Below are positions 3,001 through 57,188 of a DNA stretch of 64,000 bases, piece by piece. The stretch covers positions 186,001 through 250,000 of IMG/VR virus record IMGVR_UViG_3300037882_003354; one strand, written 5' to 3'. Every line of letters begins with the position of its first letter. Position 1 is the stretch's first letter. The notes beneath the pieces were generated by a model. The model did no database searches and was not told the DNA's origin. It saw nothing but the letters and a program-made list of their open reading frames with translations. The translations under genes and the position numbers were made by a program.

Positions 3001-4136
3001 TTCCCCATGGCAGTATTGTTACTACCGCAAACGTTTTCGTAGAGTGCTTCATATCCCTGAGCCACATTGTTGTTACCGCCACGATTCATTTGAAGCGCGG
3101 ATATTCCCACAGCCACATTTGCGCATCCAGTGGTGTTACAGAGGAGCGCAAAATGTCCCTGAGCCACATTGAAATTGCCATAAGTATTGAAACGAAGTGA
3201 GCAGGCTCCCACGGCTGTATTACGGCATCCCGTGGTGTTGCCGCGGAGTGCACCTACACCCACGGCTGTGTTATAAAGGCCAACTGTATTACCAGCCAAT
3301 GCACTGGTGCCCACTGCTGTGTTGTTGCCGCCAGTGGTGTTACGGTAGAGTGCGTTGTACCCTTGCGCCGTGTTGCAGCCACCAAAAGTATTACTAGCGA
3401 GCGAGTTATTACCCACCGCCGTGTTCCAGTTACCAGAAGTGTTGCTGGTCAGCGAATTATGTCCAATTGCCACATTACAACAACCAGAAATATTATTACG
3501 AAGTGCCTGACCAACGGCTGTATTACGATTACCAACAGTGTTGTTACGAAGTGCAGCATAGCCGTGCGCCGTGTTGAAACAGCCAGTGGTGTTATCGCGA
3601 AGCGCCCAAGCACCCACAGCAGTGTTGCAGCCGCCGTTTACACTATGATTTGCCAGAGCGCACACGCCCACTGCCACGGTCAAGGCACCAGTCATGCTAT
3701 TGCCTGCACAATATCCCAGAGCGGTGATACTACCGGTACTGGTGGTGTATGCGTACACTGTGCCCAGAGTGGTGGGGGTGGCCGGGTTGGTGGTACCTGA
3801 CCCACCTGAGCCCACCAGCACTCCATTGGAATAGATGTTGCCGCCCACGTAAAGATCCAGCCCAACACCCAGACCTCCTCCAACAACCAGTGCACCAGTG
3901 GTGGTGCCCGTGGAGTTGGTGGTGTTTGACAGTGTCAGGGTGCTGGTGGTGGCCGTGGTCAGCACCGAGTTTCCGCCCACGGTTATGTTGCCAGTGGCAG
4001 TGACTGTGGTGACCACCTGAGGGCCGCTGTTGGTTATCAACCATCTTTGGGTTGCCTCATTCCAGGTGTAGATAACACCTGAAGTACTGGTGGAAACTTG
4101 ACCGTTGGTTGGATTTGCTGGATATAATGTTGCCAT
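1..4136 (-). CDS. Cys-rich repeat tail fibre / adhesin-like beta-helical protein, partial (>1378 aa, runs off left edge)
   Basis: ATG at 4136 reads MATLYPANPTNGQVSTSTSGVIYTWNEATQRWL, then many ~14-aa repeats of type NTAVGxxALxxNTTGC. The ORF track lists no ORF in this frame, consistent with no stop codon inside the window. It starts 15 nt downstream of the 4152..6143 gene. Confidence 0.85.
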   Translation of the reverse strand, partial: MATLYPANPTNGQVSTSTSGVIYTWNEATQRWLITNSGPQVVTTVTATGNITVGGNSVLTTATTSTLTLSNTTNSTGTTTGALVVGGGLGVGLDLYVGGNIYSNGVLVGSGGSGTTNPATPTTLGTVYAYTTSTGSITALGYCAGNSMTGALTVAVGVCALANHSVNGGCNTAVGAWALRDNTTGCFNTAHGYAALRNNTVGNRNTAVGQALRNNISGCCNVAIGHNSLTSNTSGNWNTAVGNNSLASNTFGGCNTAQGYNALYRNTTGGNNTAVGTSALAGNTVGLYNTAVGVGALRGNTTGCRNTAVGACSLRFNTYGNFNVAQGHFALLCNTTGCANVAVGISALQMNRGGNNNVAQGYEALYENVCGSNNTAMGKSALYSNISGCCNIAIGASALFYATATGGNIAIGSCAGCDLITGVNNTIIGTLPGTPGLECTVLIGAGICERIKVDNNGLCINGQPLTGSGGLVPQAQPELLGTMFGCTGYFKNWTVPGAGFPFPTASDSVALGWGSGFNINSCNNVSIGGFTNIFNTSGDGNVAIGGGALSFNLTGCCNVAVGLNALHFAQGKQNVAIGNKALYGQLYDQSNGEYNVALGYGALGCNTAGSRNISIGGLGYNTEGCYNIGLGFRSAEKNRTGHCNIAIGLSAMQDGCEASLNIAIGLAALAGQYSAAGNTSCCTIAIGTEALYSNSQGCSNIALGSRALFNNTLGSCNLAIGSLALKCNTTGCYNVAVGHQALYGNTFGQCNTALGAMALCKNTTGCNNTAQGTLALFCNTTGCNNTAQGYGALYRNTTGCQNTAVGDRALTCNTAGYGNTAIGRAALTNNTMGTGNTALGMNALYGNTTGYNNIAVGNAALANNTSGINNTAQGYQALYGNTTGVGNTAQGYTALYSNTNGYDNVAVGSRALYANTVGVENTAVGAGTLRENTIGSQNTALGYGALYNNTTGQSNVAVGWNALLDNTTGQANVALGANALRCNSTGNLNVAIGYDALHKNRDGNFNVAQGYRAMCSNTVGDNNTALGTWALKSNTTGCNSTAVGCRALFNANATGGNLAVGALAGCSITTGVNNTVIGSLPAAADCVGTVLIGAGTTERIKVDDTGLYINGSPFTGGGAGSTSTAATPVVLGAVYAYTTSNLGNISVGFCSGNMTQTGQDNLVLGRCALVSNTDGGGNVALGAYGLTANTTGSHNIAIGCNSLKSNVQGSFNTALGHQALTANTQGNRNVAIGACTLCSNTTGVNNIAQGHQSLALNTLGNNNVAQGYRALYGNVTGCDNIAIGERALFRNTHGNENTAIGKRALCSNTAGCKNIAIGSLAMTLNTAGFGNIALGSDSLRSNTTGDNNVAIGNSALYSNTLGSLNSALGYQALLNNTA

Positions 4137-6577: not shown

Positions 6578-9500
6578 TTATCCGCCGGCTTCAATGGCTA
6601 ATATGAACGGAGTCATGTTAGCAAATAACGATTTAGTAAATGTTCGTCCAGATAGTACGCCAGTGGCTTGACTGATCACCAAGCCCGGTCCAATTCTAAA
6701 GTCACCATTCTGGTCAGTGCTGGTAAAGAACACCTTGCCAGTGTCCAACTGAACTGTTTCTTTTCCCTGCACAGGGTCAGCCAGTCCCACTTGTGGCAGA
6801 GCTCCGTAATCAGTACCGGCGCCCACATATTCAAACACATAACCAGATGCGCTGATATACGAACGTTGATAGAAATTCACATTGCAGCCATCTGGGAACA
6901 GATCAGTTCTTCTGACGGCTTCACCAAGATCCACCAGGTGGTGAGTGCGGTCTCTAGACCAGTAGCTCAGACCTGTGAACACGCTGTTGTAATTACCACC
7001 AGACTGCAAATCGTAAATCAATCTCCGCAAGATGAGTTTGAGGTCTCTGCGACACTTGACGTCATCATAGTCGGAAAAATTCAACCCTGGTCCAGCCAAT
7101 CCAGTGCTGCTGGATCCAATATAAGCACTGACTTCTGCTGCCAAGAAATCTAAATTTCGTTCTATCAGGGTTATGGCTGCCCCAGCGCCAGCAGGAATTG
7201 TGCCTGTCTTCAATCTCAATTTGCTGGTATCTGGAACTATTCCATTCGCCTGGGTAAAATCTGGTGCATCGATTATATCGTTGATGATTTTAAATCTTAG
7301 ATTGATAAACGGTGTAGCAGCCGCACCACCGCTGACCAGTAGATCTATTTGTTGCGTTGCAGTGGTCTGATAATAGTCCACAGAAGAGCTAGTATTATTA
7401 CTGATCACAAGGTTGGTCAAGGTGTTTAAATATACCAATGCAGCCAGATGATTTTCCACTTGATCGGGTGGTTGTACTAACGAAGCAGCAAGTGGTACCA
7501 ACGGGCTCGGGTCGCTGTATTCCAAACCATCCGCAGAAAGAATGTTAATTCCAGCCGGCTTGGGGTTTTCAGGATCAACTTTCACACTAATGGGATTCTC
7601 AGCTATGTTACTGCTCAACACCGTATAATAGGCGTTGCCGCAAAATAACAGAGTAAAATACCTGTCGTTTATTTGTCCGGGTTTGTTATCAGGATCCTGC
7701 CCGCCATTGGTCAATGCGTTGTTTAATGTCACGCTCCGATAGCCAATGTCAGTGACCACTGTACCCGAGGCAGCATACATCACTCCATTGGTGCCGGTCT
7801 GGGAGTTGTCTTGGTCCCTGATATAAACAGCATTGCCAACTGCAATACCTTCAGTATCAATTCCAGTGATGGTTATGGTGCCAGTATTCAATATACCAAT
7901 ATCAGGCAGGGCATTCAAGAAACCTGGGAAATTTTGTTCGTTACGGTAGGGACCCAGGTCACCGTTGAAATCACGAAATGCGTCCGGTGGCTCCACTTCC
8001 ATGACCAAGGATATGTGAGGGCGGTCAGCCGTGTCTGGCAGGAACACCTGAACCCTGGCATTGTTGGGCCAGAAACCGTTGGGATAATATTGATTGTCCC
8101 CTTCGTTCTCAATCTCGTCGATCTTGACCCCCGCCAGGTCGCGTTTGAACCTTGGTGGACTGTTGGGATATGCTCGGAATGCAGGGTTATAAATTGTGCC
8201 CGAGAATTTACGCTTGCCATAACCCTTGCTCAACAGGCAAATATCGCCAAAGTTGGCATTACTGTTGACGATGGACGCAATACCGCCGCTGTCAGTTTGC
8301 ACACCCACTGAGGAGAAGATGGTGAACACGGACACCAACTGGGCATAGCCGTCATTGGTGATATGAATTCCGCGGCCGCCTTGTGTCAACTGAGTATATG
8401 CGTCATACACGAATGACTGAATGGGCGAACGACTGCTGACCACTTTGCCATCCACCAGGCTGCCGCCCATGCCACCTATGGGGTCTACTTTTCGTTGATT
8501 CCAAGTGGTGGTCGTGTTGGTGTATGCCAAACTTAATTCTTCAACTTCAAAGTCACGCTTGGGGAACACCAAGACATCTCCAAAATACAGTGTGGCATTG
8601 TTGCCAAATCCTATGGTGGGGGTGTCCAGTCCAATCAAGAATGTTCCAGTAGTGGCCGAAGTCACACTGGTCACCCGAGTGGCTATTTTTGTATCCAGTC
8701 CGTTGATGCCAGTTAGTGAAAATAGTCCACCACCAGCATACACTGGCGGTGCGTATAATGGCCCACGCTCAATGATGGTGGTGATGATGCTAAAATTACG
8801 CATTATTGCCTGCTGCGGCATGTAATCACCACCGTACTGGAAGAAGGTGTTGATCACCTGCTTGGCCACAGTGCCTGTTTGTGGTGTCACTGGTTGGTTG
8901 GCAATGATCTGCAGTGCAATGTCCCTGGCATGATTGAGAGCCAGGGTGGTTGTGGTTTCCTGACCAGTGACATAATTGTACCCGGCGTTCCAATAGGAGA
9001 CTCCAGCCTCTATGGACTTCTGATTGCCACCCAGCAAGATGTCCTGACTCACTGCGTCAATAATTAGTCCGGTGTCTCTGTAACATTTTTCTTGGTTGTA
9101 GTTAAAAGAATTGGGATTCTCAGTATTATTGATATACTGTATGACTTCTGCTGCAATGAATGCCTTGTTGGCATTCAATATTTTAAAGGCGTTCATTGCC
9201 ATGCCTAGGTCGTCGGCAGCAACGAGCGAGATGGGGCGTAACGCTTGCGCTGCACCAGGGCCATCGTCGATTATGGTGTTAATTATATTAATTGCTGCAG
9301 CCAAGGCAGCTGCCGTGGCTGCATTGCTACTAACGAATGAAGAGGTGTTGGCTTGAAGTACAGTGGTTTGTAAAGGAACTATGACCCTATTTTGTATAAT
9401 GTCCCCAATAATGGTGGACATGTGTTCAAATGCGGCCACCGTTTGTGGTTGTTCGCCCTGGATAACTGAAGTAGAGGTGCTCAGATTATAATATGACAAT

Positions 9501-12500
9501 CCTGATTGTACACTCTGTCTGTTTCCACCATGTTTAAGGTCGAAACATATGCTGTCCACCATGTATCCAATGTCGCGTGTGCAAGTGTTCTCGTTGTAGG
9601 TTCCTTGAAATCCAGGATTGGTAGCGTTGATAAACGCAATAATTTCTTCTTGTAAATAACCCTTGTTGGCCTGCAACAAGTCGTAGGCATTGTAAACGCT
9701 GGCCAAGTTGCTGGGCAAGCCGTTGGGCACAATCCGGTCGCTCCATCCCAGATTATTGCCGCTGACTATGGTGATGATGTTGTCAAAGTTTGCATTGATG
9801 ATGGCAATTTCACGGTCGGTGGCAGGTTCTAGGTTGGTGATTTGTGTGGCTGTGGAATATCTAGAAACACCAACCAACACATCAGTGGCCGTGGTGATGT
9901 TTTGAATGATTTTGACACTCAACTCTTTTAGATATCCGATTGCTGAAACAGTGGGGTTCAGCTGGGTTAAAATTTCTCCAGTGTACCCGTCCTGATTCCA
10001 ATATTGCAAGCCCGCAAATGTTGACTGACTGTTTTCCACAGTGGGATAGAGTACGTCCAGAGCAATACTGTCAATGATCAATCCAGTGTCTCTCTTGCAC
10101 TTGATTTCGTTATATGGAAATTCCTTAAATGTATTATTGATCCAATTGATGGTGTCTTCTTGTATAAACGCGCGATTGGCCTGCATTAAAATCTCAGCAC
10201 TGACATATGCAGCATCTGGGCCAGGGCCAGTATACACCTCAGGAACAGAATCAGCGCCCTGCAGAATGGCATCAGTGACTATGTCAAATAGTTTGCTGAT
10301 GCTGCTGACACTGACTTCACCGCCAATCAACGCAGTGTTGATCACCTGCTGATTGGTGGCCGTGGTAATTTCTCCCTGCACAAAGAGATCCGTGCACGGG
10401 GTATTGGTCACCACCTTTTGACACAGCCCGCTCAGGTAATCAATGGCCGATGAGCATTGATTTTCCTGCCCGGCAATGTAACTGACTGCACCGTCATAGT
10501 ATGCCAATCCACTTTCCACAGACTTTTGATTGCCGCCAAACGCCACATCATACGCAATATTTTCAACTAAGATGCCTGAATCTCTATACGATTTTTCTCT
10601 GGAGAATTCAAAACTGTTAAACTGACTAGCGATGTAGGCTACGACCTCTGCCTGTATAAATGCACGGTTGGCCACCAGCAGATTGTATGCATTTTCCACC
10701 TGAACCGATTCATTCTTGGTCAAATTAATGGGCACCTTGGATGGGGCAAATTCCGAGCCCAGTCTAGTAATGTTGACGATGAGATCCATCTTATCCTGCA
10801 AACTGTTCACTTCATAAGTAGTTGCACTGGTTAAGTTTACCACCTGAGACGTGCCTGTTTGATACAGAGTGGCTGGTGGTTTGCATGTGACCACACTTTG
10901 AACAAGTGTCTTGATGTAGTTGTACGCGGCGCTGGTCCGTGGAATTTGTCCTGGTATGGTGGATGCGCCAGTATATCCGTAATAATAAAAACCGATTTTG
11001 GTAGATTGCTTGTTGCTGCTAATGGTGGTGGCACCGTGTAGCAAATCAAAGGCCACGCTATCAATAATATATCCTAGATCAATTCTGCATCTCGCCTCAT
11101 CGTACACGAATCCAGAAAGTAATCCAACTGTGATTTGTCGGTTGATCTCTTCAATCGTCTCTTCAATTACACCAGCCTTGCCGTTCACCAGGGCGGTATA
11201 AGCAGCCACCACACCAGCATCAGTGGTGGCTGTGGTATTCGATACAATGTTGCCTGGGGTAGCAGCAATTTGACGATTGTCATCACTGTTTATGATACCA
11301 CGTACCCTGTCGAACAAGGTCCCAACGTTTGCGCCATATGCACCAGCCAGAGTCTGGCAAAGACCATTGGCAAAGAAAACAGCTTCAAGAGTGGCGGTAG
11401 ACTGATCGCCAATGACTGATTGGGTATTGTTTTCTTGATTCCAGTTGCTCAGGCCAGCAAACACACTCTCACTAGTACTGTTGTACAATAAATCCAGGGC
11501 AATACTGTCTACGATCGATCCAACATCTGCACCGGTATACGCAGGCGCACTACCATTAAATGTGTTGTCGAGAAACTTGACCACTTGCTCTTGCATGAAT
11601 GGTTTGTTGGCCAACATCAAGGTGCGGGCATTAAAAAATCCTGGATTTTGTTGTCCCGGATTTATATACATGCCCTGTTCAATGGTGCCGGTGCTGACTT
11701 CCACCAGGAGAGTGGTGGTGTTGGACACCCAGGTGCCGGTGCCCACAGCCAGTGGCACTTGAACAGTCTGATTGGGCACAAACAAGGTGCCATCCTTCAA
11801 CCAAGGACCAGACAGATTGGTACAGTTTTGAATGTAGGGTGAGTGGAATATGTCAATACGGGCATCGCCTTCCAGTGGGGGATAGGCAGTGGCATATGCT
11901 CCACGGTTGAATCTGGGATCATAAACACCTTCCAGTAATCCACTACGTCCATTGAGGAATTGCATGAATGCCAGATAGCAGCCGGAGTTCATGTGGAACA
12001 AGTCCTGCGTCTTGTTAATGGGTTCAATACTGGTGGTTCTAATATCGGAACCCATGACGCTGGTATAAGGTTTCAATTGCAGCGGATTGTCTTCCAGATA
12101 GGTGCCGGCGCTGACTTGAATTTGTGTGCCCGGCTGATAGTATGGGCTGTTGATTGCACCCCCCACGGTACGGCAGGCGCGGCTGGCATCCAGTGCCCGC
12201 CCATCGTTGGTGTCGTTGCCGTCCATGGTCACATAAAGCACATTGGTCACCACAGGTGCTGTGCCTATGGGTTTCTGACCCAGCACGCGAATGTCTCCCA
12301 CTATCTCAGTCAGTCTGCTTTCAGGTTTGATCTGTATGGGGCCGCTGGTGCTCTCTATGATCTTGGTGTACAGCTGATCCACATACTCGGCACCGCCTAT
12401 GTGCACATCTCCGCCTATGCCCACGCCGCCAGTGACTGTGAACGCTCCAGTGGTGGTGCTGGTACTCGACGCAGTGGATGTCACTGCCATTTGTTCCACG

Positions 12501-13150
12501 ACCAATTTTCCAGTGAATGGGTTGTATGTCAACCCACCCTCAACGTCAGTACCGTTGGTGTTGTCAGTGAACAAATATCCAATTCCGTTGGGATTTCGAC
12601 TGAATGTTGGATAAAATGTAGCATCCACGTTGGTGGCCGTGATCAACAACTGCAAGGAGGTGGTGGCTTGTGCCACTCGTCCGTAGATGAATCCACCAAC
12701 GTTTAAATCTTTTTGTATGCCTACACCGCCGGCAATAAAAACAGCACCCTGCTGTCGTTGCAGATCGGCTGCCTCCCGTCCCAAAAGATCCTGACCATAT
12801 ACATCCTCAGCCAGAGGGATTCCGAAAGGATTGTCCACATTGTCATCGTTGGCTTTGATGATCATGGTACCGGTGTTGCCAACCACGGCAATGGTGCCAG
12901 TTATGGCAGTGTCACCACCCACATTGAGGTTCTTGGTGATGCCCACACCACCGTTGACCACCAGTGCACCCGTGGCACTTGATACTGACTCTGATGTATC
13001 CTGAACAATGGTGGGGCCGGCAATAGTCAGGTTACCAGTGACGAATGTATCTGTGGAATCTATGTAGATTTTCCCGGTGGGCGACGATACCGCCGTGTCC
13101 CCCTTGGGGGTTACAACTCTGGTTCCGGATACTCTGATCACTGTGGCCAT
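6578..13150 (-). CDS. Large virion structural protein (2190 aa): fibre motifs, beta-helix entry motif and seven helical repeats
   Basis: VLYVTMDGNDTNDG...ACRTVGGA motif and repeated KCxRDxGxIIDSIAxDLxxGGNxxSxxxGLxY(W/Y). SD AAAGGA and a TAAATA motif lie upstream. Confidence 0.75.
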   Translation of the reverse strand: MATVIRVSGTRVVTPKGDTAVSSPTGKIYIDSTDTFVTGNLTIAGPTIVQDTSESVSSATGALVVNGGVGITKNLNVGGDTAITGTIAVVGNTGTMIIKANDDNVDNPFGIPLAEDVYGQDLLGREAADLQRQQGAVFIAGGVGIQKDLNVGGFIYGRVAQATTSLQLLITATNVDATFYPTFSRNPNGIGYLFTDNTNGTDVEGGLTYNPFTGKLVVEQMAVTSTASSTSTTTGAFTVTGGVGIGGDVHIGGAEYVDQLYTKIIESTSGPIQIKPESRLTEIVGDIRVLGQKPIGTAPVVTNVLYVTMDGNDTNDGRALDASRACRTVGGAINSPYYQPGTQIQVSAGTYLEDNPLQLKPYTSVMGSDIRTTSIEPINKTQDLFHMNSGCYLAFMQFLNGRSGLLEGVYDPRFNRGAYATAYPPLEGDARIDIFHSPYIQNCTNLSGPWLKDGTLFVPNQTVQVPLAVGTGTWVSNTTTLLVEVSTGTIEQGMYINPGQQNPGFFNARTLMLANKPFMQEQVVKFLDNTFNGSAPAYTGADVGSIVDSIALDLLYNSTSESVFAGLSNWNQENNTQSVIGDQSTATLEAVFFANGLCQTLAGAYGANVGTLFDRVRGIINSDDNRQIAATPGNIVSNTTATTDAGVVAAYTALVNGKAGVIEETIEEINRQITVGLLSGFVYDEARCRIDLGYIIDSVAFDLLHGATTISSNKQSTKIGFYYYGYTGASTIPGQIPRTSAAYNYIKTLVQSVVTCKPPATLYQTGTSQVVNLTSATTYEVNSLQDKMDLIVNITRLGSEFAPSKVPINLTKNESVQVENAYNLLVANRAFIQAEVVAYIASQFNSFEFSREKSYRDSGILVENIAYDVAFGGNQKSVESGLAYYDGAVSYIAGQENQCSSAIDYLSGLCQKVVTNTPCTDLFVQGEITTATNQQVINTALIGGEVSVSSISKLFDIVTDAILQGADSVPEVYTGPGPDAAYVSAEILMQANRAFIQEDTINWINNTFKEFPYNEIKCKRDTGLIIDSIALDVLYPTVENSQSTFAGLQYWNQDGYTGEILTQLNPTVSAIGYLKELSVKIIQNITTATDVLVGVSRYSTATQITNLEPATDREIAIINANFDNIITIVSGNNLGWSDRIVPNGLPSNLASVYNAYDLLQANKGYLQEEIIAFINATNPGFQGTYNENTCTRDIGYMVDSICFDLKHGGNRQSVQSGLSYYNLSTSTSVIQGEQPQTVAAFEHMSTIIGDIIQNRVIVPLQTTVLQANTSSFVSSNAATAAALAAAINIINTIIDDGPGAAQALRPISLVAADDLGMAMNAFKILNANKAFIAAEVIQYINNTENPNSFNYNQEKCYRDTGLIIDAVSQDILLGGNQKSIEAGVSYWNAGYNYVTGQETTTTLALNHARDIALQIIANQPVTPQTGTVAKQVINTFFQYGGDYMPQQAIMRNFSIITTIIERGPLYAPPVYAGGGLFSLTGINGLDTKIATRVTSVTSATTGTFLIGLDTPTIGFGNNATLYFGDVLVFPKRDFEVEELSLAYTNTTTTWNQRKVDPIGGMGGSLVDGKVVSSRSPIQSFVYDAYTQLTQGGRGIHITNDGYAQLVSVFTIFSSVGVQTDSGGIASIVNSNANFGDICLLSKGYGKRKFSGTIYNPAFRAYPNSPPRFKRDLAGVKIDEIENEGDNQYYPNGFWPNNARVQVFLPDTADRPHISLVMEVEPPDAFRDFNGDLGPYRNEQNFPGFLNALPDIGILNTGTITITGIDTEGIAVGNAVYIRDQDNSQTGTNGVMYAASGTVVTDIGYRSVTLNNALTNGGQDPDNKPGQINDRYFTLLFCGNAYYTVLSSNIAENPISVKVDPENPKPAGINILSADGLEYSDPSPLVPLAASLVQPPDQVENHLAALVYLNTLTNLVISNNTSSSVDYYQTTATQQIDLLVSGGAAATPFINLRFKIINDIIDAPDFTQANGIVPDTSKLRLKTGTIPAGAGAAITLIERNLDFLAAEVSAYIGSSSTGLAGPGLNFSDYDDVKCRRDLKLILRRLIYDLQSGGNYNSVFTGLSYWSRDRTHHLVDLGEAVRRTDLFPDGCNVNFYQRSYISASGYVFEYVGAGTDYGALPQVGLADPVQGKETVQLDTGKVFFTSTDQNGDFRIGPGLVISQATGVLSGRTFTKSLFANMTPFILAIEAGG

Positions 13151-13166: not shown

Positions 13167-13172
13167 TATTTA
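13167..13172 (-). promoter_or_regulatory. Putative late promoter TAAATA
   Basis: CATAAATAC 16 nt upstream of ATG 13150. Resembles the T4 gp55 promoter TATAAATA. Confidence 0.6.
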
Positions 13173-13177
13173 TGGTT

Positions 13178-19105: not shown

Positions 19106-20842
19106 TTATGCTGCAGGAGGGGTTGGTGAGGCTGCACCTGGTGTGCCACCTGCCGCCATGTCCTGACCTTCAGCACCAGGCTCCTGGGCAGGTGGCTGTG
19201 CAGTGGTACTTAGACCACTGAGATCACCAGTCATGCCGTTGGCTGTGATGCCGGCATTGCGTAATTCTGCGCTGGCCGACAGGTTGGTGTCGGTGTCCAC
19301 GTTTTCTTCGCGCCATAGTGTCTCGTTCTCAGCCAATTCTTCAGCGGTCAAGCCCAGGAATCGCTTGAGTGCAAAGCGTTTGCTGATGTGCGGCACTGCC
19401 ATCATGGTGGTATACGTGGTCACACGCGCAGTATCCATCTCAGTCTGACGATAGGCCGCAAAATTCTGCGGTGGATTGAACTTTAAGTCGAAGATGTTGC
19501 TGTCAATGTTGATGCCCTTGGCATGCAGGTACATTTTAAACTCAAGATCGAAGGGCTCGTTGATTAAACTTTGGAGTCGTTCGCAGTATTTGTTGAATCG
19601 GAGCTCTTGTATATAGGCTGTCCCCACTCGTCCGTCATTGAAGTTGCTCCCTCCATCATCCGATCCAGTAGGTAGATAACTGCTAGGAATACGCAGGGCA
19701 CGAAACAGTTTATTAGTAAAGTACTTAAGGTCATCAATTTCTCCTAGGTTTTGACCGCCTTGAAGTATTTCAACCTTGCTGCCGCGGCCTTCTGCTGTCT
19801 GAGGGAAGAAATAATCCTCATTTACTGAGAGGGGGTTAAAACTGGCATCAACCACACTCTGACTGCCACCAGTGGTACTGGGGATTCTACGTTGATTTAC
19901 TTCATTTTTCACACGTTCAACAAAACTCATGGCCAAATGGCTGGGCATGTTGCCCACGTCAATGTAAAACACACGCCGTTCAGGTGCACGCTGTATGCGA
20001 TAGATTAGAATGGCATCTTCCAGCAGTTCCTTTTGCTTGAACACCTTGAATATACTCTCCAACAGGCTGTTGCCGAATGGGAAGTTGTTGTCCAGGCCCT
20101 CGCTCATGCTCAGGTGTATGACATGTCGGGCATCTATGGCATATTGATTTTGGTTCTGCGCAAATCTGCTGGAATTCGTGGATGTGGGGAATGATCCCAC
20201 CATGCCGCGGCTGCCACCAGCCCCTCCCTGTCCTGTGCCGTAACTGCCACCAAAGGAACTACTGCCACCCTGGGTGTTACTGGGCTGAATGGCAGTGGTG
20301 GCCAGTGTTTCAAAGTTGGGATTAAAGTCTCGGATGTGGTACTGCTCGGGTTTCTTGCCTTCTGACTCGTTGACAATGATTTTGTCCACCTTGGCAGGGT
20401 CCACATACATCCAACTCTGTGTTTCAGGGTCACGAACAAAGAAACTGTCGCCATACTTGAAGGCATTACGCACGATCTTGAATATTCTGATGTTAAACTT
20501 GTTTAACTTGGTCCACTGTTGCAGATACTTCTTGATGATCTTGATTTCAGTGCTGGTGGCCTGATCCTTGAAGAACACCTGGAAGGGAGTGCCGTTTTCG
20601 TCACTGGGCTGTGTGCAGAATTCTGCCAGAATGTCCAGTGCAGCGTTGACCTCACTGTCTGAATCCATGGTATCATACTGACCATAACGTTCCAGTCGGT
20701 TGGGATGCCCGGCATACACATCCGGCAGGTAACTGGAGTAGTTGGTTCTGCTGGGATTGCCGGAATTTGACCCCATGCTGCCATTAATCGGACTCAGTTT
20801 GCCCGAAGTTTCTACAGGGGTGAAATATTTACGCCATGACAT
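19106..20842 (-). CDS. gp20: Portal protein, T4 gp20 family
   Basis: Motifs LLEDAILIYRIQRAPERRVFYIDVGNMP, EDYFFP, GRGSKVEILQGGQNLGEIDDLKYF and LRIPSSYL. Confidence 0.97.
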   Translation of the reverse strand: MSWRKYFTPVETSGKLSPINGSMGSNSGNPSRTNYSSYLPDVYAGHPNRLERYGQYDTMDSDSEVNAALDILAEFCTQPSDENGTPFQVFFKDQATSTEIKIIKKYLQQWTKLNKFNIRIFKIVRNAFKYGDSFFVRDPETQSWMYVDPAKVDKIIVNESEGKKPEQYHIRDFNPNFETLATTAIQPSNTQGGSSSFGGSYGTGQGGAGGSRGMVGSFPTSTNSSRFAQNQNQYAIDARHVIHLSMSEGLDNNFPFGNSLLESIFKVFKQKELLEDAILIYRIQRAPERRVFYIDVGNMPSHLAMSFVERVKNEVNQRRIPSTTGGSQSVVDASFNPLSVNEDYFFPQTAEGRGSKVEILQGGQNLGEIDDLKYFTNKLFRALRIPSSYLPTGSDDGGSNFNDGRVGTAYIQELRFNKYCERLQSLINEPFDLEFKMYLHAKGINIDSNIFDLKFNPPQNFAAYRQTEMDTARVTTYTTMMAVPHISKRFALKRFLGLTAEELAENETLWREENVDTDTNLSASAELRNAGITANGMTGDLSGLSTTAQPPAQEPGAEGQDMAAGGTPGAASPTPPAA

Positions 20843-20854
20843 TGTGCATACCTT

Positions 20855-23158
20855 TTATATGGATGGGAAGAGATTACCGTTCAGTGATCGAGTGGCATCC
20901 ACGGTGCGTTTTGTGTAATCCGCAGTCTCCTTCACGTATTTAAGCATTTCCCGCATGGTAGTATTTAATGCTTGCACATCTGTCTGTAAAGTTTTTGTCT
21001 GAGATTCAAATTCCACAGGTTTGGGCATGGGGCCTTCTTTAATTTCAGCAGCATCCTTGGCTTCTTTGGTTTTATCAGATGTACTTTTGAGCCATTCCCC
21101 TGCCATTTTACCAAGTCCACCGCCAGTAAACCCACCAACTGCACCACCAATCAGGCCACCAATAGCTGTTCCCAGGATAGGCACTACTGATCCCATGGCT
21201 GCGCCCAGGGCGGCACCTGCCGCAGCACCCGCCAAGCCGCCACCTGCTTCCCCAACAGCACCACCCTTGGCTTTCTTTGCTTCCTCTTCAGTGAGTTCCC
21301 CGCTTGCTTGTTGTTCATTGATGTCACCAAGATTGCCGTACAGACTGGCCGCACCCAGTACAGCGCCCGCTGCGCCCCCAATTTTGGCGAATTTACCCGC
21401 GGCCTTCATCATGTCACTGGGTGCCTTGCCACCAGGTTTACCAGGACCACCAGGCCCGCCACCCAGTCCTCCGCCTAGCGCAATTACATACATGGGGTTA
21501 CCTCTGGAGCCCAACGGGCCTAATCCTGCTAGAGCACCTTTTACTCCACCGCCCTTGCCAAAACCTGCGGAAAGCCTTTTGGCAGTTTCGACCGCAGTTG
21601 CCGCAGCAGTTGCCACCTTGAGGGCAACGAACCCCGCTGTTATTGCAATTATGGCAACACCCAAGCCAGTTAAAAGTTTGGGACTTTCTAAAAGATACTT
21701 GGCAAAATCAGCAAACCCAATGGTCACTTTATTAACAAACCCAATTAGTTCTGCAAAGATCGGCATCAATCTGTTGATAATTTGTTGTCCTAATTCATTT
21801 AATGATTTTTTGGCTTCAGCAGCACTAGCAGCTTCAGAAGCCACACGCTCTTTTTGCTTGGCAGCAATTTCTTTACGTTGATTTTCCGCGTCCTGTTCTG
21901 TTTTAATACCTTGCTGTTCATTGCGATTGGCAGTGGCGGTAATTGTACTCATGGTGTCTGAATAAGACCCGTTGGATAACATTAATGCATTAGAAGTCTG
22001 TCCTAGGTCTTTCTTTGTTTGGTTAGCAGCGACACCTAATGCATCACTTGCTTTTTTAACATCATTTAATCCTTTACTACTATCGTTGACCGCCGCCGCC
22101 ATTTGATTGTTCGCCGCCGCCATTTTGGGTGCGACCGCGGTAAATTCTTGTGCGGCTTTTGTCATTGGGGGCAATCCCAATAATTGACTTGTCAAGGCTT
22201 GAGCTGCTCCTTTACCACCTTTTGCTAATGCTTCTGCCATTGCGGCGTTGGCTTTCTCTTTACCCTTTTCATCTAATGTTAGCAAATAAGATTGATATGC
22301 TTGATTGGCCGTTGCTTCTTTTAATTCTTGCTCTTGTGCTTCTCTACTTTTACCAGTTATTTGTGCTAATGCATCTAACTGCGCCATATATTCACCGGCG
22401 GCCGCCGACAATTTTTGCGTATCCTGCATCTCAGTTTTATTTCTACCACCCGTCATGGCAATGTAACTGGCCAATCCCGCATTGGCCTGGTCTGAGGTGT
22501 AACCTAATGCGCGAAGTTGATCACCTATTTCGCTTTTTTGCATTTGATTTGCAACTTTTACAAATGCTCGCGCACCTTCGTCAGCAGTGCCACCCATTTT
22601 GGCAAATGCTTGACTATTATCTTTTAACAACTTGGTAAATCCGTCCAGTGTCATGTATGTACTGGCTGCTGACATGCGCATCTGACTGAGACTTCCACCA
22701 AAGTTTATACCAGCACTGCTTAAATCTTGATAAGTTTTTAAATATGACTCTTGTACAAGTGCCAACTTTTGCATGCCACCAAATACGGCACCAGTCACAC
22801 CACCCATTTTGGCAAAAGATCCAAAGACATCACTGGCTTCAGCACTGCCGCTGGCCAATTTTTTAGTCAGGTCAACAGCTTCATTAAATGCTTTGCTGAC
22901 CGACCCGGCGGCAAATCCCAGGGCTTCAAAACCTGTGCCCAGTTTAGCGCCAGTGGCGCCGGCTTTCTGCATGCCCTGGTTGGCGGCTGCCACTGAGGCT
23001 GGATTTATTCCGCTCTGCTGTGCCAGCTTCTGAATGCTGGCCATGCTCTGCTTGTTGGCGGCCAGGCTACTTTGCAGTAATAGTTTTAACGTGGCTTCCG
23101 TGGCGGCATTATTAAGTTCAACTGCCGCGTTACCGATCGTGCCTGTTACATCTGCCAT
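20855..23158 (-). CDS. Probable tail tape-measure protein (gp29-like)
   Basis: 767 aa, Ala-rich and helical, with a hydrophobic segment and glycine zipper (GAAAGAALGAAMGSVVPILGTAIGGLIGGAVGG). Divergent from the gp26-like chaperone. Confidence 0.7.
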   Translation of the reverse strand: MADVTGTIGNAAVELNNAATEATLKLLLQSSLAANKQSMASIQKLAQQSGINPASVAAANQGMQKAGATGAKLGTGFEALGFAAGSVSKAFNEAVDLTKKLASGSAEASDVFGSFAKMGGVTGAVFGGMQKLALVQESYLKTYQDLSSAGINFGGSLSQMRMSAASTYMTLDGFTKLLKDNSQAFAKMGGTADEGARAFVKVANQMQKSEIGDQLRALGYTSDQANAGLASYIAMTGGRNKTEMQDTQKLSAAAGEYMAQLDALAQITGKSREAQEQELKEATANQAYQSYLLTLDEKGKEKANAAMAEALAKGGKGAAQALTSQLLGLPPMTKAAQEFTAVAPKMAAANNQMAAAVNDSSKGLNDVKKASDALGVAANQTKKDLGQTSNALMLSNGSYSDTMSTITATANRNEQQGIKTEQDAENQRKEIAAKQKERVASEAASAAEAKKSLNELGQQIINRLMPIFAELIGFVNKVTIGFADFAKYLLESPKLLTGLGVAIIAITAGFVALKVATAAATAVETAKRLSAGFGKGGGVKGALAGLGPLGSRGNPMYVIALGGGLGGGPGGPGKPGGKAPSDMMKAAGKFAKIGGAAGAVLGAASLYGNLGDINEQQASGELTEEEAKKAKGGAVGEAGGGLAGAAAGAALGAAMGSVVPILGTAIGGLIGGAVGGFTGGGLGKMAGEWLKSTSDKTKEAKDAAEIKEGPMPKPVEFESQTKTLQTDVQALNTTMREMLKYVKETADYTKRTVDATRSLNGNLFPSI

Positions 23159-23184
23159 TGTTTTTCCAGTGTTATCTGCGTAGA

Positions 23185-23225
23185 TAAATATCTTGACGAC
23201 TACTTATCATAGTGTCAGTTATTTA
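23185..23225. promoter_or_regulatory. Pair of opposed TAAATA motifs (+ at 23185-23190, - at 23220-23225)
   Basis: One motif per divergent gene, oriented face to face. Confidence 0.55.
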
Positions 23226-23240
23226 CCGGAGATAAAGATC

Positions 23241-24104
23241 ATGATACCGCAACAGCCAGGCAATCCATTAACATCTTTCATGCGGCAACCCAAGATTTAC
23301 ATCAGGCTGCCTAGTAATGGTGAGTATTGGCCCGCAGGGTCATTACAAATGACAGAAACTGGCGAATTTCCCGTGTACTCCATGACTGCCAGGGACGAGT
23401 TGTTGATCAAAGTGCCCGATGCACTGATGAACGGCCAGGCCATAGTGGATGTTGTGCAGAATTGCATGCCCAATATTAAAAATGCCTGGATGATACCCAG
23501 CATTGACATGGATGTCATACTGATTGCCATTAGATTGGCCACATACGGTGAAAAAATGACCACACCCATTACATTTGGTGAGGACATTGAAATGGAACAC
23601 GTGGTGGATCTGCGTTCAGTCATGGACACCATGATGAATCAGATCGCCTGGGATCCTGTGGTGTCCATCAACCAGGATTTGACTGTGTTTGTCAAACCCT
23701 TGACCTACAAACAGATGACTGAAACTGCATTGCAGACATTCGAAACTCAAAAGATCATGCAGCTAGCCAACGATGAAAAAATGAATGAAGATGACAAGTT
23801 GGCCATGTTCAAGGAAAGTTTTAAAAAGTTAACCAATGCCACAGTGGGCACAGTCAGTGCCGGCATCTTCAAGATTGACAGCAGTCAGGGCAGCACAGAC
23901 AATCCAATATACATTAAAGAGTTCATTGACAACATCGACAAGGACATCTTTAATAAAATCCAAGAACACTTGGAGATGCTGAAAGATAAAAATACCATCA
24001 AACCAATCAATGTACCTGTAACAGATGACATGAGGGAAAAAGGCATCACAGGGGAAGTTGTTGAAATCCCCTTAATATTTGATGCTTCAACTTTTTTCGT
24101 ATAA
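23241..24104 (+). CDS. gp26: Baseplate hub assembly chaperone, T4 gp26-like (likely start MIPQQPGNPL)
   Basis: SD GGAG precedes ATG 23241. Motifs PKIYIRLPSNG, MTARDELL and IDMDVILIAIRLATYGE. Ends in STFFV. Confidence 0.75.
   Translation: MIPQQPGNPLTSFMRQPKIYIRLPSNGEYWPAGSLQMTETGEFPVYSMTARDELLIKVPDALMNGQAIVDVVQNCMPNIKNAWMIPSIDMDVILIAIRLATYGEKMTTPITFGEDIEMEHVVDLRSVMDTMMNQIAWDPVVSINQDLTVFVKPLTYKQMTETALQTFETQKIMQLANDEKMNEDDKLAMFKESFKKLTNATVGTVSAGIFKIDSSQGSTDNPIYIKEFIDNIDKDIFNKIQEHLEMLKDKNTIKPINVPVTDDMREKGITGEVVEIPLIFDASTFFV
24092..24098 (+). other. Putative -1 ribosomal frameshift site T TTT TTC
   Basis: X XXY YYZ heptamer in the gp26 frame, one codon before its stop. The -1 frame runs into the 24110..24328 ORF. 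Confidence 0.6.
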
Positions 24105-24109
24105 GGCTT

Positions 24110-24328
24110 TTGAACCTCGATAACGCAGGTATCGAGAGGTTGGTCAGACAGCATGATGACCATACAAAAGCCATCAAAGAAGAGTTGTTGAGAATGTGCT
24201 GGTACATGCGAGGTGGGCTGAGTTACAATGAAGCCCACCTGCTGACCGTGGAAGAACGTGCGTTGGTTAACAAGATTATTGAAGGCAACCTGGAAACCAC
24301 CAAAGAAACACAGTTGCCTTTCTTTTAA
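24110..24328 (+). CDS. gp51-like baseplate/tail assembly domain, probably expressed as a frameshift extension of gp26
   Basis: CWYMRGGLSYNEAHLLTVEER resembles the gp51/gpT-type motif. It has only a TTG start with a poorly spaced SD. Confidence 0.6.
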   Translation: MNLDNAGIERLVRQHDDHTKAIKEELLRMCWYMRGGLSYNEAHLLTVEERALVNKIIEGNLETTKETQLPFF

Positions 24329-24942
24329 ATCTTTTTGTCCAAGAACTTACTGTGAAATATCACAGATTCTGACGTGGTCGTACGGTTGGGATTGTTAGGG
24401 TTGGCCACATGCGTGCGGCTAGTGGGTAGTCTAGTAACTGTACCACCTGTACTAGACGTTGGGTTTAATTGATTTGCCATCTGCGCCATGGCACCACCAG
24501 CTGGCGCAGCGGCCGGTTTAGCTGCCTGCGCAGAACCCAATTGTTTTTGCAGGAGTGCTAATATGCGTTGCTTGCCCTTGGCGTCCAACTGATTGATGTT
24601 AGTTTTGACTTGGTTATACAATGATGGTGCAGCCGCTGGCTGCGGTGTCGTCCCAGGGGTAGAGGTTGCTGGAGCAGTCGCAGACTGTGCTGTTGCTGAG
24701 GGAGCAGTTGTAGACGCAGGCGCTGTCCCAGTTGCATCATCTCCTGCACCAGCTACATAGTTCTTGCCTGCTTGGTATCCTGTCTTGACAGCACTCCCAA
24801 GTCCAGCCACACCGCCGGCAACAGCACCAACGCCCTTGGCGGCAGTACCGACAGCTTTGCCTATACCAGCACCAATTTTATTCAGAATTGGTCCTTCCTC
24901 AACCGGCTCGGTGTTTTCTATAATTAAGTCATGTATTCTCAT
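24325..24942 (-). CDS. Hypothetical low-complexity protein, possible internal head protein
   Basis: 205 aa, Ala/Gly/Thr/Pro-rich, N-terminus MRIHDLIIE. SD GAGG and TAAATA at 24966-24971 lie upstream. Confidence 0.6.
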   Translation of the reverse strand: MRIHDLIIENTEPVEEGPILNKIGAGIGKAVGTAAKGVGAVAGGVAGLGSAVKTGYQAGKNYVAGAGDDATGTAPASTTAPSATAQSATAPATSTPGTTPQPAAAPSLYNQVKTNINQLDAKGKQRILALLQKQLGSAQAAKPAAAPAGGAMAQMANQLNPTSSTGGTVTRLPTSRTHVANPNNPNRTTTSESVIFHSKFLDKKI

Positions 24943-24986
24943 ATAAACCTCTAGGTCAATGCTTTTATTTATGACCTATTGAGGGG

Positions 24987-25459: not shown

Positions 25460-25885
25460 TTAGAGTTTTTTAATGTGCGAGCCATGTACACGGACACTAA
25501 TTTGCCCGTTGTAATAATCATTAGATTCCAAAACTTTGTGTTCAAACTGAAGTCTTGCTTCAATGTAAGAACACTCTGCCTTGGATTTACAGTAGTACAG
25601 TATCTCTCGCTTGAATTTGTCGGTGCCTATGGTGTTGATATCAGCGGTTAGTTCTACGCTGGATCCATAATAGTCTTGCCAATCGGAGTCAATCTTGCTC
25701 CTAATTTTTTTTCGTTTCTTGGTGCCGTTCTTCAACTTCACAGTCTTGTAGGTCGTTTTACTAAATTTTGCTAGTTTTTTGCCTATGTATTTGCGTCCTG
25801 TGACCATATTGGTTATAAGATAAACATAACCAACACAGTCCTCAGGTAATTCTTCAACTATAGTATTTTCAAAATACCAAGTCAT
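25460..25885 (-). CDS. Minimal GIY-YIG family nuclease (catalytic domain only)
   Basis: GYVYLITNMVTGRKYIGKK, YYGSS, conserved Glu (SYIEARLQ) and Asn (YYNGQI). 141 aa. Confidence 0.85.
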   Translation of the reverse strand: MTWYFENTIVEELPEDCVGYVYLITNMVTGRKYIGKKLAKFSKTTYKTVKLKNGTKKRKKIRSKIDSDWQDYYGSSVELTADINTIGTDKFKREILYYCKSKAECSYIEARLQFEHKVLESNDYYNGQISVRVHGSHIKKL

Positions 25886-29245: not shown

Positions 29246-29274
29246 AGTGTAGCAGCACACAATTACAAAGTCAA
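29246..29274 (-). promoter_or_regulatory. Sigma70-type promoter for the gp47 operon
   Basis: TTGACT-N17-TACACT with an extended -10 TG. Confidence 0.7.
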
Positions 29275-30182
29275 GGTTCTAGTTCCTCTTCATCCTCGGC
29301 AACGTCTTCGCTCTTGGGCATTCTCATGTTCTTGTACAGCTCAGCCTGGCGGGCAATTTCTCCAGAATATTCTTGCTGGTTCTGTCGTGTCAGGCTGGGG
29401 GTTAATCCAGCCTCCACCAGCAGGTCGTCTCGAATGTTCTGACCTTTCTTTTCTTCATTTAATATCCTGGTGAAGGAATTGGTCACTGCCGCGGTATAGT
29501 AGGCAAAGGGATTTTCACTCTTCATCTCATCAAACTTTAACCCAATATGACTGAGTTGTAGTATTGCCTGCCCTTTCATTTCATCAACATATGTGTATCC
29601 GCGCCAGTTGCTACGCTGTGCATATCTTTCGCTGAGTTTGATGAACATCCTGCCCAGATTTTCAGTGATGCGCCCATGATCTGTGGAAAACTCACCAGAT
29701 TCCAAATCGCCAATCCAGTGGCTTTTACCCACACAGATCAAACCATCCTCCTCATATTTCCAGTGCTGGAAGGGTGGGAAGTTGACCTTGGCATGCGAAT
29801 CGGCGGTGGTCCTGGTGGTTTTCTTTCGACCTGGCGCCAAGGGCACATGATCGAACGACATTATTCTTATGATGACATCGGTCTTTTGTATGGTCTTGTA
29901 GTCTGGCAGACATTCTGCTAGTTTGATTTTACGGTCACCGGCTGCTCTAGCGGCATTAAACGCTTGCAGGCCCAGTCTCTTGGCTCTATTGCGTTTGGCT
30001 TCAGCCACGGTGCGTATGTTTATCTTGTCTATATCAGCCAGAATAATGTCATATTGGTGATATTCTGGCTGAGCAAACGTGGAGTATGAGCATTTACTAC
30101 GGTGTATCTCTGCCAATAGGTCTCGATTATTTAGGTATTTGACCTTACGGGTCGTTGGTGCAAGTGGTGGTATGGTGGTCAT
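29271..30182 (-). CDS. gp55: Late-transcription sigma factor, T4 gp55 family
   Basis: YLNNRDLLAEI, NWRGYTYVDEM, KFDEMKSENPFAYYT and FTRILNEEKK match the gp55 pattern. Confidence 0.85.
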   Translation of the reverse strand: MTTIPPLAPTTRKVKYLNNRDLLAEIHRSKCSYSTFAQPEYHQYDIILADIDKINIRTVAEAKRNRAKRLGLQAFNAARAAGDRKIKLAECLPDYKTIQKTDVIIRIMSFDHVPLAPGRKKTTRTTADSHAKVNFPPFQHWKYEEDGLICVGKSHWIGDLESGEFSTDHGRITENLGRMFIKLSERYAQRSNWRGYTYVDEMKGQAILQLSHIGLKFDEMKSENPFAYYTAAVTNSFTRILNEEKKGQNIRDDLLVEAGLTPSLTRQNQQEYSGEIARQAELYKNMRMPKSEDVAEDEEELEP

Positions 30183-37124: not shown

Positions 37125-37146
37125 TATACCCAGATTATTGATGTAA

Positions 37147-37152
37147 TAAATA
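37147..37152 (+). promoter_or_regulatory. Putative late promoter TAAATA
   Basis: AATAAATATAG in the gap before gp6. Confidence 0.55.
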
Positions 37153-40620: not shown

Positions 40621-43600
40621 ATGGCAACTAAGATCATTAAGTCAATCAATCTACTACCGGAATTTTTACGTTCGGAAAAAAATTCAAAATTTTTATCCAG
40701 CACAATTGATCAGCTGATTCAACCACCACAGCTGGAGCGTATAGACGGGTACATTGGATCAAAACTGACCCCCACTTATAATTCAACGTCTGATGTATAC
40801 ATACCTGAGTCGCTGCCACTGCGCCGGGACTATCAATTGGATCCTGCTCTGGTCATTAACGACGCTGCGGAAACGCCACGCGATGTCATTGCACTTGATG
40901 ACCTAATCAATGAAATAAAAACCAAAGGTGGGATAAACAACAATCTGGACCGAATGTTTCGTTCGGAGTTTTACTCCTACGACCCACACATCGATTGGGA
41001 TAAACTGATAAATTATGCGCAATACTACTGGTTGCCGGTCGGGCCAGACATAATTACAATCACCGGTCAGCAGAGTAATTCCACCAGCACCTATGTGGTT
41101 CGCGACAACCCGCAAGATTCGGCATTTATTTTCAACCCCAATGGGTTGATTGAGGATCCGTTGATCACCCTGTACAACGGCAGTACCTATCGCTTTGAAA
41201 TATCTTCCAAGCACAAGTTTTATATCAAGACAGCACCGTCTGAGGGATCCGACGATTTATATAATTTTGGTGTAACCAATAATGGCACCTCGAGTGGCAT
41301 CATTACACTTGTGGTAAATCAATACACACCCATGACGCTGTATTATGTGGCCGGGGATCAAAAATTTGCAGCTGGTGAGTTTGTAATCAAGGACATCACC
41401 CAAGATTCCGCTGTGGATGTTGATGCTGAAATTGTGGGTAAGAAGAATTATATATCAGGTACCGGCATCGCTCTAACCAATGGCATGAAGATTAAATTTG
41501 GTGGCGACGTTTCTCCAGTATATTATCAAAATAAAGAATTCTTTGTTGAAGGTGTGGGACGAGCCATTACATTGATCGATTATACAACATTGAATACTCC
41601 TGATCGAATTGCCTCGATCTTTGATGAAGACTTTGACGCAAATCCATTTGATGAATACCCCTTTGACAATTTTAAAAACCTACCATTAGCGCCTGAATAC
41701 ATGACTGTCAATCGTGGCAGTCGAGACCTAAACCCCTGGACACGATATAATCGTTGGGTGCATCGTGATGTCATAGAGCTTTCTGCCAAGTTCAATGGAC
41801 GCGAGCCAGTTTTCCCTCAAAAGCTGAGAGCCAAGCGGCCTATTATTGAATTTAAAGCCAATCTGGCGTTGTACAACTTTGGAACCCAGGCCATTGGCAG
41901 TGTCGACCTCATTGATACAGAGACCAAGGATGCATTCAGCACTGTGTCAGGATCTGCTGGCTATCATGTTGACGGGGTGTTGTTGCAACAAGGCCACCGA
42001 GTGATATTCAACGCAGATTCGGATGCTGATGTGCGCGGCAGGGTTTATCAGGTCAATTATGCAACTTATAATAAAAAACTGACTCTTGAACTCAAAATAG
42101 TCAGTGACACCGTGCCGGCTGCATTTTCGTCCACTGTGATTAATACTGGTGACACCTATGCCGGTACCAATTGGTGGTATGACGGGTCTGTTTGGAGATA
42201 CGCACAGCAGCACACCAGTCTGAATCAGCCACCTCTGTTTGATTTATTTGACAATCAGGGTTACAGTTATAGCGATCCTGATGAGTATTTGACAAATTTT
42301 TCCGGAAACAAGATTTTTTCTTACGAGGTCGGCACTGGTGCAACTGATGCAGTGTTGGGCATTCCGTTAAAATATCGCAATAGCGTGGGTGTTGGCAGTT
42401 ATCTGTTCAAGAATTATTTCATGACAGAATCCATTTCAATTACGGAAAATCAGACAGACTACACCATTCCCACGTCAATGGCCTACTGTAAGTTTGCGAA
42501 TGCAGCCGGAGATGTCTATAAAAATGTGTGGGCACCAGCAGAAGAATATCAGATCCCCATACTTCAATTTCAGGCCCTTGAGTCGTCCACAGCAAGTGTG
42601 GCCGTGACATGCATAGATGCGCCCAGCACCACTAACATGACAGTTGATGTATACGTGGATGACAACAAGTTACCGACGTCCCAATATACCACGTCAGTTG
42701 TTGCTGGCACTTATTTGGTTAATTTTACTACACTGATACCCACGGGCAGTCGAGTTTTATTCAAAATATACTCTGACAAGATTCCTAACGATCGCGGATA
42801 TTACGAAACACCCATAAGCCTTACCAACAACCCGTTGAACGGTGTGATTGAATCAATGACACTGTCAGACCTCGGCGATCATTTGCACACCATGGTGAAC
42901 AGAACTCCGTCGTTCTCTGGCCAAGTGCTGGGCAGCAATAACCTGCGGGATTTGTCTGACATAGAAAAATATGGATATAGACTGGTGTCCAACGCCAACC
43001 CCATGCCGTTTGCTCAAATGTTCATTGGAAAAAAAGAGCATAGCGCCGTTGATGCAATTGTCAAAGCAGGAGATCAGTATAATCAATTTAAGATGATACT
43101 ACTCAAGCAAATTTCATTGTTGAGTGAGCAAGTTAATCCTGTTGATGCACTTGACATTGCAATGAAGGAAATCAACAAAGATAAAGATTTACGCACTCCC
43201 TATTATTTGTCTGACATGATAGCATATGGCTCGGACAAGACTGTCAGGACTTGGAGAGTGGCCAACAGCCGCATCAAGCAATATTCCCTGTCGTCCTCCT
43301 TTGATCCATCTGTGTTGGGCATGCGTTCAGTGCTGGTCTATCTCAATGGTGAGCAATTGTTGTTGAATCAAGATTACTCGTTTGACACAGTTGACTCCTT
43401 GGTCACCCTGCTGGTTGATCTTAAAGTTGGCGATCAACTCACAGTCAATGATTATTATAGCACTATTGGTTGCTATGTTCCTCCGACCCCTACTAAATTG
43501 GGACTGTATCCAAAATATAGTCCTTCGAAGTTTTTAGATAATACCTATGCCAAGGAGCCCATCAACGTCATTCAAGGGCATGATGGCAGCATCATGGTGG

Positions 43601-57162: not shown

Positions 57163-57182
57163 CCTGCCAAGAATTTTTTAAA

Positions 57183-57188
57183 TAAATA
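57183..57188 (+). promoter_or_regulatory. Putative late promoter TAAATA
   Basis: AATAAATATCATTATG, 5 nt before the ATG. Confidence 0.6.

Follow-up and report, generated by a model that had tools for sequence, protein, structure and literature searches.

Programmed -1 ribosomal frameshifting in tail-assembly genes is a textbook rule for long-tailed phages, as in the G/GT pair of phage lambda (Xu, Hendrix and Duda 2004; PMC5009743). In these systems, a -1 shift on a heptamer a few codons before the stop of a tail-assembly gene next to the tape-measure gene gives a short major product and a long minor product that share the N-terminal body, and the extension has no start codon of its own. Lambda G/GT works by a fixed ratio of the two forms, in which the shared part binds the tape measure and the T part binds the tube protein (PMC5009743). 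A comparable logic is found in E. coli dnaX (tau/gamma), where a -1 shift on a homopolymeric heptamer, with a downstream stem-loop, an upstream SD-like element that helps and a stop very soon in one frame, yields two products in a fixed ratio, the shifted one being the shorter. In contrast, T4 and its relatives have served as the model without such a frameshift. T4 gp26 is classed as a hub assembly chaperone, although its presence in the hub is disputed (PMC3004832), and the T4 record (NC_000866) annotates a second product of gene 26, the 95-aa 26' (positions 2803-3090 on the minus strand of the T4 stretch examined), which arises from an in-frame internal start and shares the C-terminus. T4 thus also makes two products from this gene, by a different route.

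Here, a gp26-like gene with features of a -1 frameshift is described in a giant T4-related freshwater phage. The window analyzed is a 64,000-nt stretch (positions 186,001 to 250,000) of IMG/VR record IMGVR_UViG_3300037882_003354, a complete 322,512-bp virus record with direct terminal repeats that occurs in freshwater and lake metagenomes. The phage carries T4-type core genes, including the portal (19106-20842, minus strand; PF07230, E 3e-108), prohead protease and major head protein, gp46/47-like nuclease, a gp55-like late sigma factor (29271-30182) and a gp5-like hub-lysozyme, whereas its tube protein is only weakly identified (E 0.0015). The gp26-like gene runs on the plus strand from ATG 23241 to TAA 24102-24104, with GGAG 8 nt before the ATG, and encodes 287 aa without internal stops. 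Its product matches Pfam PF12322 (T4_baseplate, the family of T4 gp26) at 30.6 bits against a cut-off of 24.5, covering residues 61-252, as well as phrog_150 (baseplate hub), and it is the only PF12322 gene in the genome. It should be noted that this protein has a single Cys, whereas T4 gp26 has two CxxC pairs (CTCG and CPEC; a putative zinc site) and the in-frame long homologs discussed below have four invariant Cys (C96, C99, C244 and C247 in their alignment). The window's clade seems to have lost the putative zinc site, which is a clade-specific loss and not an exclusion from the family.

The gp26-like gene lies next to, and is transcribed divergently from, a 767-aa tape-measure-like (gp29-like) gene (20855-23158, minus strand; phrog_794, tail length tape measure protein, E 4e-20), behind which lies the portal gene. 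The same order, portal, then large structural or TMP-like protein, then gp26-like gene, is found in Phosso, PA5oct and Serratia BF, while in RaK2, GAP32, XaC1, Munch, CBB and Hallingskeid the stretch retrieved shows only the large structural or TMP-like gene next to the gp26-like gene. The divergent orientation holds in the isolates as well. On the other side, a 205-aa ORF with no Pfam or PHROG family (24325-24942, minus strand) converges on the gp26-like locus, and its stop codon overlaps the stop of the -1 ORF by 4 nt, leaving no room for a terminator. A SegE-type GIY-YIG homing-endonuclease-like gene (25460-25885, minus strand; PF19835, E 1e-32) sits between the gp26 locus and the gp46/47-like nuclease genes, and very large ORFs of 4599 aa (40621-54420, plus strand) and 2190 aa (6578-13150, minus strand) lie in the structural region. 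In addition, ATAAATA, the core of the T4 late promoter TATAAATA, lies 12-57 nt upstream of several gene starts (23184-23190, 13167-13173, 24966-24972, 37146-37152 and 57182-57188), including 51 nt before the gp26-like ATG. However, its total count is no higher than chance (9 against 7.8), and only the placement is suggestive.

An earlier note, made from the sequence alone, had drawn attention to the end of this gene, and what it observed there proved correct in every detail. The last codons are ACT TTT TTC GTA TAA, with the slippery heptamer T TTT TTC at 24092-24098 (codons 285-286, Phe-Phe) in X XXY YYZ register and the frame-0 stop one codon after it. The -1 frame is closed by TGA 24080-24082, open from 24083 to the stop TAA 24326-24328, and reads FFRIRLLNLDNAGIERL... 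The extension spans 24098-24328, comprising 76 codons from CGT 24098 to TTT 24325 plus the stop, so that the two predicted products are 287 aa and 286 + 76 = 362 aa. In the -1 reading, FFRIRLLNLDNAG..., the first ATG, GTG or TTG is TTG 24110, which lies 5 nt after the frame-0 stop and 3 nt after TAAGG. Unlike in dnaX, the shifted product would be the longer one, and no SD-like element is seen upstream of the heptamer. Among the 41 ORFs of 150 aa or more on both strands of the window, only this one has an in-register heptamer in its last 20 codons followed by a long -1 extension, 74 codons beyond its stop.

A rival explanation is an assembly artifact or a decayed gene, the real gene being one long ORF and the T6 run a homopolymer error or a recent frameshift mutation; in its favor, in-frame long versions exist in other lineages. 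However, three independent freshwater DNA assemblies cover the T6 run without an indel, and the window, the 27 IMG/VR loci and the 12 isolate-phage records inspected, produced by many laboratories, all show the same frame relation. A homopolymer error is therefore excluded, and this explanation as a whole is extremely unlikely. Two short contigs from other, more distant phages align to the window only across the heptamer and the start of the stem (24063-24112) and diverge on both sides, this junction being the best-conserved DNA stretch of the locus.

The site is conserved far beyond the window's clade. Alignment of the junction in related phages, which the earlier note had proposed as a check, showed that all 39 relatives inspected carry an in-register slippery heptamer followed by a homologous -1 ORF of about 75 aa. 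These comprise 27 metagenomic loci from IMG/VR (39-72% protein identity) and 12 isolate records representing 11 distinct phages, as Serratia BF was inspected under two accessions. A nucleotide search of the phage collection with the locus gave no match, and a scan with one of the in-frame long proteins (P0029) found no IMG/VR relatives, but tblastn places the nearest cultured relatives among jumbo myophages at about 30% identity. Phosso, PA5oct, Serratia BF, RaK2, GAP32, XaC1, Munch, CBB, Hallingskeid and Atu_ph07 have T TTT TTC, and Xoo-sp13 has T TTT TTT; the isolates' -1 ORFs are about 72-78 aa. The identical heptamer is thus present in 38 of the 39 relatives, which share only 26-72% gp26 identity. 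The RaK2-type and window-type extensions are homologous (hhalign probability 93%). In the phage collection, 74 records hold the RaK2-type extension and 4 hold the window type, with the match beginning at the FF and, in most of the rows listed, overlapping the annotated hub gene; together with the PA5oct-like phages found by tblastn, these make up the cultured relatives. None of the records inspected annotates a joined CDS, the -1 ORF being either called from an arbitrary internal start, as a small hypothetical gene, or not called at all, as in RaK2 and PA5oct.

The main alternative to a frameshift is that these are two separate genes, with the small ORF translated on its own from TTG 24110, by coupling or re-initiation after the TAA, to give a free 72-aa protein. 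In favor of this, a TTG occupies the same codon in 15 of the 25 distinct junction sequences tabulated, an ATG overlaps the TGA stop in three more, and record annotators call small ORFs here; in the window, the TTG with its weak TAAGG 3 nt upstream could allow some independent or re-initiated translation. However, the -1 ORF has no conserved start. Across the 25 junctions, the first start codon is TTG at codon 7, ATG at codon 4, TTG at codon 9 or 15, or ATG at codon 15 or 39, and PA5oct has no ATG, GTG or TTG anywhere in its -1 ORF. In two loci (L025 and L029) the first start is codon 39, inside the invariant W-x-M-R-G-G motif. The encoded peptide is conserved, with F1, F2, R3, W37, M39, R40 and G41 invariant in its alignment, and the conserved residues upstream of any start (F-F-R-hydrophobic-R/K-L-L) align with '..F R x K/R L I..' inside in-frame proteins; residues 3-6 lie upstream of the TTG. 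The annotated starts differ from record to record, and an SD-to-start spacing of 3 nt is poor. Moreover, the base after TTTTTTCG, the third base of the codon after the heptamer, varies freely (T, C, G, A), which changes frame 0 (Val, Ala, Gly, Glu) but is silent in frame -1, where the codon is always CGN, Arg. Selection therefore acts on the -1 frame before the frame-0 stop, which falls one codon after the heptamer in 22 of the 25 junctions. Independent initiation cannot explain PA5oct, L025 or L029, nor the conserved upstream residues, and is regarded as very unlikely.

Other lineages encode the same pair of products without recoding. A profile of the extension, searched against 1.8 billion representative proteins, found among the top 150 hits at least 17 cluster representatives of 319-351 aa in which a T4_baseplate body is followed in the same frame by this extension, with a single Phe and non-slippery codons at the junction. 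Two metagenomic contigs, L037 and L038, carry a short gp26 paralog (294 and 276 aa) followed directly by a long one (346 and 334 aa), so both forms are wanted; in L038, a weakly tape-measure-like gene lies upstream in divergent orientation. The junction of the long gene is not slippery and is followed by no RNA stem. It should be noted that the short paralogs still end with T TTT TTC or T TTT TTA (L037 1687-1704; L038 2769-2789), although their -1 frame stops after one codon, which is either a relic of an ancestral frameshift site or a plain codon preference at the FF motif. A T-rich FF motif alone is therefore not proof of shifting. T4 keeps the FF motif three residues from the C-terminus but encodes it as the non-slippery TTC TTT, and no homolog of the extension was found by the profile anywhere in its genome. 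T4 gene 26 also lies in the hub and tape-measure gene cluster.

A predicted stimulatory RNA structure occupies 24105-24172. Its outer stem pairs 24105-24112 with 24165-24172 and encloses hairpins at 24116-24136 and 24141-24162, with a 6-nt spacer after the heptamer in which the frame-0 stop sits. The minimum free energy is -25.1 kcal/mol, with z of -4.1 in one calculation and -3.8 in a second, and no shuffle of 200 folds as well. Stable stems (z about -4 to -8) are seen across the clade, z being -3.7 or lower in 13 of 15 loci of the window's clade plus Phosso, and three loci (L024, L025 and L028) and Phosso use different stem sequences that start at the same position. In an alignment from the window's clade, the 12-bp stem is 79% paired against 32-49% when the 3' arm is slid, 9 of its 12 pairs show compensatory double changes, and none of 500 shuffles reaches the observed values. 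Controls that need no shift, namely the in-frame junctions, the short paralogs and T4, show no such structure (z from -0.3 to +1.7). However, the RaK2-like group and PA5oct show no significant downstream structure either (z -1.8 to +1.3), that of PA5oct being weak.

These data also bear on slippage at the RNA level, in which RNA polymerase would add one U in the T6 run and standard translation would give exactly the same 362-aa protein. Xoo-sp13 has a longer run, T8, and no RNA reads cover the site, as the one metatranscriptome that holds the phage covers only 24142-24351, so this possibility is not excluded directly. Nevertheless, runs of about 9 or more A/T are needed for appreciable transcriptional slippage in bacteria, and this run has 6. 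In addition, a stable, covarying stem 6 nt downstream of an in-register X XXY YYZ heptamer is the signature of ribosomal -1 frameshifting, and transcriptional slippage does not require the invariant register of the run relative to frame 0. It is therefore considered very unlikely.

Taken together, the phage very probably makes two versions of its gp26-like hub assembly protein by a programmed -1 ribosomal frameshift. The analysis itself establishes the site, the frame relation and its conservation, the lack of an independent start codon, selection on the -1 frame upstream of the frame-0 stop, the RNA stem, and the natural single-frame and two-gene versions of the same pair of products. The mechanism is inferred, albeit with strong support, and the trans-frame protein is predicted rather than observed in any of these phages. 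In this view, most ribosomes would stop at TAA 24102 and make the 287-aa form, while a fraction would slip back one base on U UUU UUC, the two tRNA-Phe re-pairing from UUU/UUC to UUU/UUU, probably while the ribosome is paused by the stem, and would then read CGU AUA AGG... to the stop at 24326, giving a 362-aa form with a helical extension of about 76 aa.

The interpretation offered in the earlier note, that gp26-like and gp51-like genes are fused as the equivalent of G/GT beside the tape measure, is only partly supported. The frameshift, the two product sizes, the gp26-like identity of the upstream gene and its place beside the tape-measure-like gene are supported. The gp51-like identity of the downstream ORF is rejected, as profile comparison with T4 gp51 gives an hhalign probability of 1.8%, the extension profile finds nothing in the T4 genome, and the extension belongs to no Pfam or PHROG family found in the searches. 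In T4, genes 26 and 51, which the note took as the separately annotated counterparts, are transcribed divergently, and gene 26 is followed directly by gene 25. The G/GT comparison is reasonable, given the short and long forms, the position beside the tape-measure gene and the lineages that encode both forms separately, but it remains an analogy. The pair is neither co-oriented with nor immediately upstream of the tape-measure gene in the lambda manner, nor sandwiched between the tube and tape-measure genes, and the body is about 285 aa, against roughly 100-140 aa for the lambda-type chaperones. Pfam searches return only PF12322 and no tail-assembly-chaperone family. A confident AlphaFold model of an in-frame long homolog (pLDDT 90, pTM 0.85) shows the extension as helices, but Foldseek found no PDB match at E of 0.001 or better, and VIA-align gave at most Z 8.1 on a single helical hairpin, which is within the noise for helical models. 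In the PA5oct record, the portal and the TMP-like protein are flagged as seen by ESI-MS/MS and the gp26-like protein is not, which is only a hint that it may be absent from virions, whereas the virion proteomics of phage CBB was uninformative, the main-text table listing CBB_251 and not the neighboring genes, with ambiguous gene numbering.

By analogy with lambda G/GT, and resting on gene position and T4 genetics rather than on binding data, it is tentatively inferred that both forms are needed in a set ratio for hub and tape-measure assembly, in which case the shared body would act on the tape-measure or hub complex and the extension would recruit a second partner. A broader and more speculative reading, possible but less likely than not, is that the gp26 family is the missing tail-assembly chaperone of T4-type contractile tails and that two isoforms of it are generally required. 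Evolution would then have supplied them in three interchangeable ways, by -1 frameshifting in jumbo phages such as RaK2, PA5oct, Atu_ph07 and this one, by tandem short and long paralogs in metagenomic lineages, and by an internal start in T4 (gp26/26'). On this reading, the frameshift sets the stoichiometry that couples the tape measure and hub to a second partner, which would extend the Xu-Hendrix-Duda rule to the lineage usually treated as its exception.

The tail-gene frameshift strategy is itself established; what differs here is that the same logic appears in another protein family, the gp26 hub-assembly gene, in a large, deep group of T4-related jumbo phages whose model member lacks it. 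No report of frameshifting in gp26-like genes was found in full-text literature searches, although these miss most papers in subscription journals and a prior description cannot be excluded. At least 74 cultured isolate records carry the extension, and the finding corrects the annotations of those in which it is called a small hypothetical gene or not called at all, as in every record inspected. It also supplies a conserved heptamer-plus-stem element for studying U UUU UUC frameshifting in bacteria, gives a concrete, testable role to gp26, one of the least understood T4 tail genes, and offers a natural three-way comparison, between frameshift, duplicated genes and short form only, for asking why two isoforms are needed.
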